A DNA stretch of 64,000 nt from Fimbriosthenelais zetlandica (GCA_977030845.1 OZ365109.1:41106001-41170000), one strand, 5' to 3'. Positions 51,991-59,782 are shown, numbered from the stretch's first letter. Translations and numbers: made by a program. The notes: a model not told the origin generated them from the sequence alone.

Positions 51991-54900
51991 TTATCTCCCA
52001 GGAGTGGACTCCGGGCAGAATACAAACTCGTTAGCATTCCATCTACTACCTGTGTTCTGAATGTTGAGCTCTTGGCCCTGGTTTTTGAAAGCTTGGCAAA
52101 AATCGACCAAGGCTTGGATACCAAAGGCTTCCGCAGCTTTCGTGATGTCCTTCAGGTCTTCGACTTTCAGGGAGACCTTGCCATGGTAAAGAAAGTCGAT
52201 GATGGACTCCATAGTCTGGCGGGAGAAGTTGCACTCAACGGTGACGGAGTTGCCGTTCATACGATTGTGGACGATGTCTTTGAAGAAGGAGCTGCCAGCG
52301 GCGAGGACGACACCATGAGCCATGAGAACACTGCCGTCCTGGACCACCACCGATACGTCACAACACACCTGGTTTTCTCTTAGTTCATATATGCCCTGAA
52401 GAGTGGCGGGGCCCCAGCCTTTGCTCTCTATGCTCAACACCGTACTGGTGTCCATTAACTGAAAAACAAGAAAACGAATCGATCAGTTTATAGATTGTCT
52501 GATTGGTGGATGGATAAAAGGGTAATTAAGATAAATTAACATTTGATCAATAAATCATTAAGATTTTATGATATGGAGTTTCAGGTTTGGAATTAGGGCT
52601 GTATGGGGGGGTGGGGGGTGACAATTTATATAAAGCTCAGTGTACCTGACATCCTAGGTCTTCATCATCTTCACCGGTACTCTTTTTGCACCGCACATGG
52701 AGTGGGAAGTATCCTCCATTGGCCGTGTAGAATCCCGCCCTTGGAGACACCTGCGTATAATCTGGCAGCACAGGTCGTGATTGACCGACCTTGTGAACAC
52801 GTCTGATATGCCTCCTTAAAGATCGAATTGACATGACCTTCTCACAGTAAGAACATAACGTCTGATTGGGTTCCAAGATCTTTGGGGATGTTTCTGGTGC
52901 TGCATTGGAATGCTTGCGCTTCTTGGGTGACCTGTCTTTCTTGCGGTCTTTTCTGGTGCGTTTCTTGATGTTCTCTGGTGTCCCTGGCTCAATGGAATCT
53001 AGTGTCTCTCTCTCGCCTAAATCTACTGTCACTTCTTCATGATAACCCCCGTGATGTTCTATCCCCCATGGATCATTGTCAATAACCGTCTCTGTTGGGA
53101 GTATATCCACAGGTGTATTCTCTTCCCCATCTGGCTCGCCTCCCTTCTGTCTTTCACTCTCCTTATCCTTCTCTTTCTCCTGACATGTATCCTTCTCTTT
53201 GTCCTGACATGTATCCTTCTCTTTCTCCTGACATATATCCTTTTCTTTGTTATGACATATAGGATGAGATTCTTTAGCATTCGCCTTCTGGCGTTGAACT
53301 CCATGATTTCTTTTTAAATGCAATACCATATTAGTTCTACGGGTAACTTTTGCACCACAAGTACAGTGGTAATGCAAACGGGGATCACTGGTGGGAGCTT
53401 TACATGGGAGGTTGCAGGGTAAGATCACTAAGCCTGTAACATGAACAATATAAACATTGTTGTAACTTCTTGTTGTTACTTCTTTGAATAATACTTGCTG
53501 AGAATGGAGCCTCAAATTGAGAATATATTTTTTTAATTCAGTAATTATTAACGTAGGTCTAAAGCTTTTCAATTTTGTCTGACATCCCTGAAAACTTTTG
53601 GCATACCGGTACCGGTACACTGCCACTTTAAGTACGGTAGGGAAAAACACAAAGATAGTCTTATGAGCGAATTGTAGGCCCTACTTACCATCCGTTTTGA
53701 CTCCATGTTTGACATGACGCTGCCTCAAATGCTCACGCAGTCGACTTCTTGCCAATCTTTTGATTGAGCCAATTGGACAGAGGGGGCAACGAAGAGGTCG
53801 GGACAAATTATCTTCAACCCACTCGTCAATTTTGCCTTCGTCAACACGAGACAAACTTGCTATGTCCTTTACCGGTATTTCCTGTTGGTCATCTGATGAT
53901 GGGCTTACATGAGAATTAGGCCGAGATAAGATACTCTGTCCCTGCAAATAAATGATAAGAGTTGAAACATGTCAATGCAGGTGGCCAAGATCTGGGGTTT
54001 TGGATCAAACATCCATATTAGCCTTACATCCAGCAGACCAGGTAAGCCTAGTTTTGGTGTAGGCCTACCGGTAAGTCTACCGGTATAGATCTATAAATTA
54101 GGCTATAAATTAAATATACACGATGTAATTTGTTATTGGCGAAGACCGTTTCTTAAATATTTACCCGATTTTTTTTTAAAAAATCACATAGGACTTAGTC
54201 GCCCGAGAGACCCCGACCCTTGGAAGGACTATCTCATGGTTCCAGGACTTTAGAGAGCATACATGTCATTGCATGTAATAGGCCTATTAGGCCAAACAAA
54301 ATAATACCTTTTTGTTTGAGGTTTACCAACATCGGGGATTTTTTAAAGTTCTATAACAAAAACAGAAATCTAAAGTCCTGACTGAATTAACTCTGAATGA
54401 TTGAAATCACTGCTTTCCTTAAATTTTATGTGAAATCGAAAATACCGGTAACTTTTTTGGGTCGGCTGTGGAAATAAACACAGCCCCCCACCCCATTAAA
54501 AAAAGAAAATAGAGGCCTAAAGGCCTTTTATTTTTGTTGGGCCTTATTACGCTTTAGACGCTATTCTACTGACTAGTTACCCGGGTAGGCCTAGACCCCT
54601 ATAGTCACTGTAGCCTACCTAGACCTATTAGGTAATTCGAATTCTTTTTTTTTTTGTATCATATGGTAATTCTATTTGGGTCGATTGGGTATAAAACCGT
54701 ATATCATGTGTGTACAAACAATCGACCCAAATAGAATTACCACGATAGATTCTACCATACAAAAAAAAAACATAGTCCCGTCCGATTTGGCAGAAAATGG
54801 ACAAGATTGGATTTATTCACATGCTTGGTATTCATCTTCATCACTAAAGGAAAAGACTCATCTAACCTGCATGTTCTAACTCCATTCATTCTCTCAGAAT

Positions 54901-57224: not shown

Positions 57225-59782
57225 TTATGTCCCAGAAGTGGACTCTGGGAAGAATAAAAACTCGTTAACATTCCCACCAACTGGATTCACAATGTTGAGC
57301 TCCTGGCCCTGGTTTTTGAAAGCTTGGCAAAAATGGACCAAGGCTTGGATGCCAAAGGCTTCCGCAGCTTTCATGACGTCCTTCAGGTCGTGGACATTTA
57401 TGGAGACCTTGCCATGGTAAAGAAAGTCTATGATGAACTCCATAGTCTGGCGGGAGAAGTTGCACTCAATGGTGACGGAGTTGCTTGTCATGCTATTTTG
57501 GACGATGTCTTTGAAGAAGGAGCTGCCAGCAGAGAGGACGAGGCTGTGGGCCATGAGAACACTGCCGTCCCGAACCACCACTGAGATGTCACATAAAACC
57601 TGGGTTTCTCGTAGTTCATACATACTCTGAAGCGCCGTGGAGCCCCAGCCCTTGCTCTCTATGGTCATCATTGTACTGGTGTCCATGAACTGAAAAACAA
57701 TAAATTTATTGGTTAGACTTGATAGGATATAGGGGTTTTTTGGCCATAAATACTACAGTAGATCTATATCCCGCGAGGATTAGTAGAAGTTTATGATAGA
57801 TATAAAGTTCTTTAAATAGGCCTAGACAGATAAAAATCAAATCAGGGTTGGGGGTGACAATAAATTCATAGGCTATAAAGCTCAGTATACCTGGCTTCCT
57901 GAGTCATCGGCACTATCTTCTTCATCATCTGCACTCTTTTTGCACCGCACATGGAGTGGGAAGTATCCTCCATTGTCAGTGTAGAATCCCGCCTTTGCAG
58001 CGGCCACGTGCTTAGCTGGTATCTTAGGTCGTGATTTGCGACCCTCATGCATAACTTTGATATGCCTCCTTAAAGATCGAATTGACATGACCTTATCACA
58101 GTAAGGACATAAGGTCTGATTGGGTTTCAAGGTCTTTGGCTCCAGTGTCTTGGAACTTCCTGGTGATGCATTTGAACGCTTGCGTTTCTTGGGTGACTTG
58201 TTATTCTTGCTACTTTTCTTGCCGTGCTTAGGTGTCCCCCTCTCTCCGAATTCCAAAATCTCTCCCTCGTAGTGGTAATTGTAGTGGTTTTCTCTCCCCC
58301 ATGGATTACTTGCATCACTTTCATTGTTCATTTCTGTCTGGGAGGTATCCACAGTTGTGTTCTGCTCATCTGACTTTTGTCTTTCATACTTTTCATGCTG
58401 CCGCCTATATTTCTCTCTCTCCTCCTCCTCACGGATTTGTCTAGCACTTATCTTCTTGAGTTTCTTTCCATGATATGATTGTAGGTGCCTTAGTATGGAA
58501 CATTTAGTAGCCATAATTTCACCACAGGAACAGTGGAAATGACTCCGTTTCGATTTGTTTTTGCTGTCCTTACATACGAGGTTGCAGGGTAAGAGGACTA
58601 AGCCTGTAACAGGAACAACATGAATATTGTTGTAAAATCTTAGGATCATACTTGCTGAGAATGGAGAATCAAGTGGATAATATCTCAAACAAATCCACAG
58701 TATCGGTACCGCATTAACAACCCATATAATAAGACCACCATCGGCGCACATCAATTTACATCAGAGAAGAGATTCGCCCTTAATGGGCCTACACAAATCG
58801 TAGGGAAGGCCATGCGCTGATGCAATGACTAGAGTTACGGTATTAAGACACAAAGAGCTAATTTTATTACCTTCAGAATCTAGCTTGACTCCGTATTTCA
58901 CATGAGTCGTCAAGTGCCTAACAATTCGGCTTTTTGAAGCTCTTTTGATTCTTCCAAGCGGACATATCGGACAATTGAGGTCATTCACATAAGTTGCGAT
59001 CCACTCCTCAGTTCGACCCAACACAGCATGAGATATATGCCCTATTGTTTTCTGTAGGTTATCTGATGAGGGGCTGTTGTCAGTGTTGACGGGTTGTACC
59101 TGTACCTGCAAACAAATCATTAGATATTAAATAAAACTATAACATAGCCTATAATATATTTATATCTACCCGGTATTTTTAAAAGGTATTTTTTAGTTAT
59201 CAAACCTCTAGTGTCTACAGGGCCTATCTAGGCCCTACACTAGGCCCTATCTAGGTCTAGGTATGTATTTTTTTGGTCATGAAACGGGCCTATCCTATCT
59301 GTTAGTGTTACTGTACCGGCAGTAGATCTATTGCCTTGTTTGAGGGAAATCGTTTAAAAAAGTCGGGACTTTTTTTTTTTTTTTTTAAATCCCCGATGAC
59401 GCCGATTGAGGGCTAGGCTATTTTAATTTATAACGCTCGGTCGGTAAACTACAAACAATGTTGTTTTGTTTGGCCTAATAGGTCTACCAAAGATTCTAAT
59501 ACCCCATTTGTCGGCACAAATGGAGCCGTAGAAGAAGCGGGAACGACTGCAGCGCCACTGTGCGGAGTGTGGCGGGAACCCTGAACAAATTAAAATGATG
59601 ATTTCGTCCTTTTGGGACACCGTACAATATCATGATGAACGCCGCTTTGCACCACTGCAGAGCCAGAGGCACATGGACGCTATTTGAGCCATTTGGCAGA
59701 TCAAAACAAACCTATTTACTTCTATATTTGATCTACATACGCTACCACCCACGGACAGTTGTCTTACCTCTTCCCGTTCCAT
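57225..59782 (-). CDS. Chimeric N-terminal zinc-finger cassette + C-terminal BTB protein, copy C, ~475 aa
   Basis: Exons 59782-59768 (MEREE; an upstream in-frame ATG exists at 59836), 59105-58871, 58603-57891, 57689-57225; phases 0,1,0 as in copy B. Same Cys/His motifs (CPIC..HLTTH, CNLVC..HFHCSC..HLQSYH, CPYC..HIKVMH, GFY..GGYFPLHVRCKK). Confidence 0.8.

Follow-up and report, generated by a model that had tools for sequence, protein, structure and literature searches.

How do two members of a tandem family of BTB genes come to carry, between a tiny first coding exon and the BTB exon, a pair of exons full of zinc-binding motifs that the third member lacks? The question is raised by a locus of Fimbriosthenelais zetlandica (GCA_977030845.1 OZ365109.1:41106001-41170000). 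The window, by which we mean the whole 64,000-nucleotide (64-kb) stretch that was analysed, carries in its right third a minus-strand array of three tandem BTB genes, here called copies A, B and C, and it is B and C that possess the additional pair of exons, the cassette. We consider it somewhat more probable than improbable that B and C arose by the capture of N-terminal exons of KDZ/Zisupton type, now fused to BTB, and that they encode a protein combining DNA binding with a BTB domain; the direction of transfer, the splice to BTB, the DNA binding and the repression are points that we infer. An initial annotation of the window had proposed the four extra exons at the minus-strand positions given here, and they do lie there, with canonical AG/GT borders and in phases 0-1-0. 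A slash marks an exon border.

53689 to 53941, minus strand: copy B cassette exon 1, with a variable N-terminus and finger A (EW..CPLCP..H..H, about 53714-53788), ending in phase 1; from reading and alignment to contigs L001, L002 and L005
52646 to 53433, minus strand: copy B cassette exon 2, ending in phase 0 at CAG/GTACAC; from reading and alignments
about 53303 to 53416, minus strand: copy B zinc module B, PCNLPC..HYHCTCG..H..H, in cassette exon 2
52913 to 52930, minus strand: copy B SPKKRK, resembling a nuclear localisation signal, in cassette exon 2 past a charged low-complexity linker
52793 to 52855, minus strand: copy B BED/C2H2-like finger C, in cassette exon 2
52688 to 52735, minus strand: copy B GFYT..GGYFPLHVRC motif, in cassette exon 2 and followed by an acidic tail
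58871 to 59105, minus strand: copy C cassette exon 1 (finger A); from reading and alignment
57891 to 58603, minus strand: copy C cassette exon 2, with module B, linker, SPKKRK, finger C, PLHV motif and acidic tail, ending in phase 0 at CAG/GTATAC

The acceptors of the cassette read ...TTTGCAG/ and ...GTTACAG/ and its donors /GTAAGT, /GTAATA, /GTACAC and /GTATAC, and the frames are uninterrupted for 347 codons in B and 316 codons in C. All of the motifs first described for the cassette are present in both copies (CPxC..H..H, PCNLxC..HxHCxCG..H..H, SPKKRK, CxYCxKVMSIRSLRRHI..H and GFYT.NGGYFPLHVRCKK), and the reported divergence without stops is borne out, the cassette proteins being about 49% identical with 16 in-frame insertions or deletions (indels) and zero stops. 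Pfam returned C2H2, BED and Di19 matches to the cassette, all of them sub-threshold, with finger C of copy B scoring 16.1 bits against zf-BED (cutoff 20.6); the Atlas search with the cassette gave only generic C2H2 clusters at low recognition, and the word-indexed protein collection gave zero matches. An AlphaFold (AF2) model of exon 2 of copy C, built from an 8-row alignment, reached a predicted local distance difference test score of 91-94 in finger C and about 83 in module B, with the remainder disordered and a predicted template modelling score of 0.25; the model supports the local finger folds only.

Are the cassette and the BTB exon joined in one protein? The features that bear on this are the following.

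50509 to 50523, minus strand: copy A tiny exon 1, MEMDE, ATGGAAATGGACGAG/GTAAGA; from direct reading
55407 to 55415, minus strand: copy B tiny first coding exon, MGE (ATG GGA GAG), ATGGGAGAG/GTAAGA; from direct reading
59768 to 59782, minus strand: copy C tiny first coding exon, MEREE, ATGGAACGGGAAGAG/GTAAGA; from direct reading
52459 to 52645, minus strand: proposed intron 3 of copy B, donor GTACAC and acceptor TTGTTTTTCAG; from reading and B-C comparison
51991 to 52458, minus strand: copy B BTB exon (L-MDTST... to stop), BTB/POZ domain only; Pfam BTB, 72 bits
57225 to 57689, minus strand: copy C BTB exon (F-MDTST... to stop); Pfam BTB, 74 bits

Cassette exon 1 of copy B is without any Met, and therefore the host's tiny exon is needed for the start codon. 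The tiny exons are homologous across A, B and C, each ending in ...GAG/GTAAGA. In P0012, the orthologue of copy A from another species (62% identity across 483 residues, and the sole match of copy A in the word-indexed protein collection), the big exon has a good acceptor, …CTTTTACTTGCAG/CTTTTTGATACG, and no Met there, so the ancestral start codon lay in the tiny exon. The BTB acceptor is at the ancestral position, as judged from the same orthologue, and the frames from the tiny exon through the cassette to BTB are compatible in both copies. The proposed intron 3 is conserved between B and C at its two ends only, GTAYACTGAGCTTTAT… and …TTGTTTTTCAG, and that of copy B contains neither AATAAA nor ATTAAA. 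The BTB domain, which is clearly under selection, would have no promoter of its own within the 190-nt intron 3.

Several features count against the join. The last donor of the cassette (CAG/GTACAC in B, CAG/GTATAC in C) is weak and has no G at +5, and an in-frame TGA, absent from the initial annotation, follows it after two codons in both copies, so the cassette could end there. The BTB has its own ATG one codon past the acceptor in both copies, and no protein containing both cassette and BTB was found in the protein collection, which apparently does not include the genome of the window. As an alternative in-frame donor near the end of the cassette we considered the only other GT (in B) and rejected it, as it is in phase 1 and is not conserved in C. 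The weak donor with its TGA, the BTB's own ATG and the lack of a known fusion protein would also fit one transcription unit that gave two proteins and no fusion: a finger-only protein that ends at the TGA in unspliced intron 3, and a BTB-only protein that is made either from the BTB's own ATG or from a cassette-skipping isoform. Such an isoform, with the tiny exon spliced straight to BTB, is in frame, the phases of the tiny and BTB exons being compatible (0-0) in the way they are in copy A. Against two separate proteins, however, intron 3 shows the usual pattern of an intron, with conserved ends and a diverged middle, copy B lacks a poly(A) signal in it, and a retained intron followed by the 460-nt BTB open reading frame would make an unusual mRNA. 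As the TGA and the donor were inherited from one ancestor, their joint conservation favours neither reading. We regard the two-protein arrangement as unlikely, and the splice that would fuse the cassette to BTB, as it can be read from the sequence, as likely without being secure.

Where did the cassette come from? A phmmer search with exon 2 of copy B against 1.8 billion representative proteins gave nine matches, none below 1e-8. P0004, P0007 and P0008, like the related P0010 and P0011, follow exon 2 collinearly over its full length in the motif order PCxxxC…HYHCxCG…H…H, CxxCxKVMxxRNLxRHIxxVH, G.Y.V…G…PLHV, and hhalign compared the B+C alignment with the P0004/P0007/P0008-type family at a probability of 99.2% (E 2.5e-19). 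Contigs L001, L002 and L005 have an upstream exon with EW…CPLCP…H…H that matches cassette exon 1, and the intron between the two exons is in phase 1 and five residues before the 'PC' motif both in B and in L001; the acceptor side in L002 agrees on this position, and copy C agrees by exon lengths and alignment. The shared position and phase of the intron therefore indicate that the cassette was copied as genomic DNA together with its intron, and that it is no retrocopy. The exon of the relatives continues from PLHV into a cysteine cluster with no intron, whereas the cassette halts just before this cluster, and therefore the last donor of the cassette is a new site at or near the truncation point.

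The remainder of the donor-type gene connects this family with transposases. P0011 lies on an 897-kb contig with further donor-type exons downstream on the same strand. The gene of L001/L004 has an exon matching Pfam CxC4 ("associated with KDZ transposases") at 28.3 bits (cutoff 26.9), an exon with CxxCG..LDGN, FECVRCGHFPSILTLDGN, on the same strand, and a long exon in which KDZ is the only Pfam match, a weak one (E 0.13) to the last 46 profile positions, which is the expected end of the profile. In the Atlas feature search the KDZ-like exon scored 0.95-0.97 to clusters of the KDZ set, which supplied 67 of the 100 best, and the structural neighbours of the top Atlas match included a cluster named 'HMG domain-containing protein 3', a CxC4 cluster and a Peptidase_C48 protein. 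The best Atlas neighbour of the donor's N-terminal open reading frame is a 162-member chordate cluster of about 1004 amino acids, 90% of it with CxC4, and finger C of the L001 donor scores 23.9 bits against zf-BED, above the cutoff of 20.6. In the window itself, tblastn with pieces of the donor gene detected no CxC4, DGN or KDZ-like catalytic piece. From these sequence matches we take the donor family to be animal KDZ/Zisupton-type proteins. The initial annotation had guessed at the N-terminus of Zisupton/KDZ (HMGXB3-related) transposases; the homology to the N-terminus of CxC4/KDZ-like proteins and the shared intron uphold this, while the link to HMGXB3 comes down to an indirect Atlas structural neighbour, and a search of the paper library used here found no paper linking HMGXB3 with Zisupton. 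We also observed that the KDZ-like exon ends in a long tandem repeat of 14 residues (FPADQPSTGNQDLP-like; L004 15950-16600), which is visible in the DNA too.

Other results speak for an origin that involved no mobile element, in which part of a zinc-finger gene resident in the host, either an old domesticated KDZ-derived gene or a multi-module one similar to P0002, would have been duplicated to give the cassette, and KDZ-type proteins would share, or would have acquired, the same host finger module. The best E-values in the search belong to P0001 and P0002, multi-finger proteins without a transposase part, although their scores stem from repeated single modules and a low-complexity linker. P0002, from the limpet Patella vulgata, is a host-like gene in which the unit of finger A and module B occurs in three tandem copies; it is annotated, contains introns and stands between ordinary host genes (L006 10001-16380, OW026353.2), and it may be an independent domestication of the zinc module. 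In addition, no terminal inverted repeats were detected around the L001/L004 gene, its introns are multi-kb, and this member of the donor family may itself be domesticated. Each relative was found once, each in a different sample, and the contigs of P0007, P0008, P0010 and P0004 are too short to reveal the rest of the gene or its copy number. Against a resident source, however, collinearity with the whole cassette as far as PLHV is confined to KDZ-type proteins, which then run on into the cysteine cluster without an intron, so the cassette looks like the truncation of a longer protein; CxC4 and the KDZ-like region occur within the same donor-family gene, and the top Atlas neighbour of the donor N-terminus is the 162-protein CxC4 cluster of about 1004 amino acids. 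We therefore think it improbable, even more so than two separate proteins, that the cassette had a non-mobile origin.

Has the cassette been maintained since its capture? On their divergence, B and C are old duplicates. The Jukes-Cantor (JC) distance between them is 0.53 in intron 3, with indels of 1, 2, 2, 5, 9 and 13 nt, 0.75 in intron 2, with indels of 6, 13 and 19 nt, and 0.73 in the 3' flank, where indel lengths are mixed and 0 are multiples of 3. In cassette exon 1 the distance is 0.54 and in exon 2 outside its 3' third 0.47, with all indels being multiples of 3 in both; it is 0.22 in the 3' third of the cassette (indels of 3, 9 and 12 nt) and 0.15 in the BTB exon, which has a single 3-nt indel and a ratio of nonsynonymous to synonymous substitution rates (dN/dS) of 0.46. 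Exons are 2-5 times less diverged than introns, and indels are multiples of 3 in 17/17 cases in exons versus 4/26 in non-coding stretches (Fisher p = 1.4e-8). In a neutral simulation with the observed number of substitutions about 11 stops were expected, as against the 0 seen, and 0/20000 runs stayed open. Pairwise dN/dS over the whole cassette is 0.65 (bootstrap 95% confidence interval 0.47-0.90), and 0.3% of replicates reach 1 or more. Between the two copies there is no difference at any of the 16 positions inferred to bind zinc in fingers A, B and C, nor at the H and C of PLHVRC. A ratio near 1 had been named at the outset as telling against a functional cassette: the overall value is significantly below 1, and the signal is nonetheless weak, as by block dN/dS ranges from 0.4 to 1.0 with wide intervals and stands at about 0.97 in module B and in the block of finger C and PLHV, two conserved blocks which, taken alone, weigh against the functional reading.

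The frame-keeping indels, the absence of stops and the dN/dS together indicate that the cassette is translated and kept open by selection in both copies, with weak constraint outside the metal-binding positions. That B and C are instead a pair of truncated BTB pseudogenes with a dead transposon fragment in the intron, open by chance, is very improbable, for the lost host fingers and the two blocks with dN/dS near 1 that such an origin would explain have to be set against neutral runs that never stayed open, indels that keep the frame in exons only, exons that diverge less than introns and zinc ligands that are all conserved, and a recent gene conversion of an open template, which would revive it, is disfavoured by the JC distances of 0.2-0.5 within the cassette. 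Divergence between B and C is very uneven (51938-52954 versus 57171-58219): JC distances are 0.15-0.22 and synonymous distances 0.22-0.27 in BTB and the last third of the cassette, as against about 0.5 and 0.6-1.1, respectively, in the first two thirds of the cassette, and two stretches of about 37 and 45 nt show no difference even at synonymous sites. An old gene conversion over the 3' kilobase, or constraint at the nucleotide level, is a possible cause.

What did the host gene look like before the cassette entered it? Copy A and the remains beside B and C bear on this.

46652 to 48109, minus strand: copy A big exon, of ancestral type, with BTB and C2H2 array and no cassette; from Pfam and tblastn
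51930 to 52022, minus strand: copy B, what is left of the ancestral array's first C2H2 finger, in another frame and with the histidines gone; from tblastn with copy A residues 238-268
56940 to 57256, minus strand: copy C decayed remnants of the ancestral C2H2 array; from tblastn

Copy A is, by Pfam, an ordinary gene for BTB and a C2H2 array, with the N-terminal BTB followed by C2H2 fingers that characterises ZBTB proteins, and tblastn within the window found no cassette remnant in its intron. B and C lack that arrangement: in them the array has decayed and lies out of frame, and the BTB would stand at the C-terminus. The decayed finger that had been reported next to the cassette genes is confirmed, the remnants downstream of BTB in B and C having lost their histidines and lying in another frame with a stop. 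The BTB open reading frames of B and C end at nearly the same position, and the nearest solved structures to their BTB are NAC1, ZBTB17 and ZBTB8A.

We propose a series of steps by which B and C could have been formed. The ancestor would have been a BTB-zinc-finger gene of two exons, a tiny ATG exon and a large BTB/C2H2 exon, which was located head-to-head with SURF1 and was tandemly duplicated. A gene of Zisupton/KDZ type, either a transposon or a derived gene, would then have entered intron 1 of one duplicate in the same orientation, and its first two coding exons with their own intron would have been retained while the CxC4 and catalytic parts were lost. The retained exons would encode a CPxC..H..H finger, a PCxxxC/HxHCxCG zinc module, a BED-like C2H2 finger and a G.Y..G..PLHV motif. 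The tiny exon of the host would now give the promoter and the start codon, and through a new weak donor just past the PLHV motif the cassette would be spliced in phase 0 onto the old BTB acceptor. Decay of the finger array native to the host would have followed, and a further duplication of the fused gene would have produced B and C, both of them open.

The predicted product of about 475-505 amino acids would comprise, in this order, a short N-terminus, finger A, module B, a charged helical or disordered linker with SPKKRK, the BED-like finger C, the PLHV motif, an acidic tail and a dimerising BTB domain of transcription-factor type. By analogy, such a protein would act as a regulator that recognises specific sequences through an exchanged DNA-binding module; its targets could plausibly resemble the ends of the donor element, with BTB contributing dimerisation and co-repressor recruitment. 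We put forward tentatively, as possible but on balance doubtful, the more specific suggestion that B and C are lineage-specific 'reverse ZBTB' regulators born outside vertebrates, in which the end-recognition module of a transposase has replaced the C2H2 fingers, binds transposon ends and recruits BTB-dependent repression. It can be put to the test, since it predicts binding of the fusion to the ends of the corresponding element family.

New transcription factors are known to arise by transposase capture, with most of the documented cases coming from vertebrates and most involving KRAB. Cosby et al. are said to have described in 2021 host-transposase fusion genes that arose by exon capture, for example KRAB-transposase fusions and SETMAR. 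Similar to these, B and C would have the DNA-binding region of a transposase without its catalytic core, placed in a host intron, brought in frame via splice sites and paired with a host effector or interaction domain; unlike them, the partner is BTB, the source is an N-terminus of KDZ/Zisupton type, the host is apparently an invertebrate, and the case is read here from genomic sequence alone. Of the traits by which host-transposase fusions are recognised, a transposase-derived domain, a missing catalytic core and purifying selection are found in B and C, a joint mRNA of both domains is predicted, and we regard a host-transposase fusion by exon capture, an event of known kind, as probable. As the host's own DNA-binding array was lost afterwards, B and C would represent a domain swap and not an addition, in contrast to the known fusions. 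B and C share the N-terminal motif series and the intron position with Zisupton/KDZ transposases and HMGXB3-like derivatives, via the donor relatives, but are not KDZ transposases themselves, since they are missing CxC4, the SWIM-like CxC..CxH cluster and the entire catalytic region with its KDZ (DDE-type) domain. In relation to canonical ZBTB genes, copy A and P0012 are ordinary members, whereas B and C have a dead C2H2 array and, if fused, a C-terminal BTB.

Partial precedents are known for both halves of the proposed product. The F-box::CxC7 genes of fish captured the zinc-chelating domain CxC7 of Zisupton (PMC12062965), and B and C resemble them in combining a cysteine/histidine zinc module of Zisupton/KDZ with a host protein-interaction domain in small gene families; they differ in having N-terminal fingers (not CxC7, and with CxC4 not retained) and BTB in place of the F-box. 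ZBTB11 has an integrase-like zinc-binding domain N-terminal to BTB, followed by C2H2 fingers (PMC12062965). A zinc domain derived from a mobile element upstream of BTB, and the order of zinc before BTB, thus have a precedent; unlike B and C, ZBTB11 has retained the C2H2 array at its C-terminus and carries an extra domain that is retroviral-integrase-like, whereas B and C have lost the array and contain a module of transposase type. What appears new is the combination of KDZ/Zisupton N-terminal fingers with BTB, the later loss of the host array and the survival of parent and derivatives side by side. The stages occur together in 14 kb, where the unmodified parent A stands beside two diverged derivatives, B and C, and the decayed remains of the original fingers, and with the donor family recognisable down to its intron the locus would be a clean natural example of a DNA-binding-domain swap. 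If the reading is true, KDZ/Zisupton N-terminal fingers and BTB join the known capture partners.

Further observations concern the surroundings of the three genes. A CATCATGACGCGYTAACCA-like motif precedes the tiny exon in all three BTB copies, at about 50640, 55510 and 59920. Copy C stands head-to-head with a SURF1-like gene on the plus strand (about 60165-64000), within which an exon fragment at 62441-62716 (plus strand) has a Pfam SURF1 match with an E-value of 0.0015, below threshold. Elsewhere in the window, self-BLAST identified a tandem repeat with a period of about 66 nt at 32541-32937 and, immediately beyond the downstream end of copy A, clustered direct and inverted repeats at 45032-45640. 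Intron 1 of copy A contains a large foldback (inverted repeat) at 49468-50274, with arms of about 320 nt in total in four collinear blocks, 95-98% complementary, and a central spacer of about 145 nt; it resembles a young hairpin or an insertion similar to a miniature inverted-repeat transposable element.

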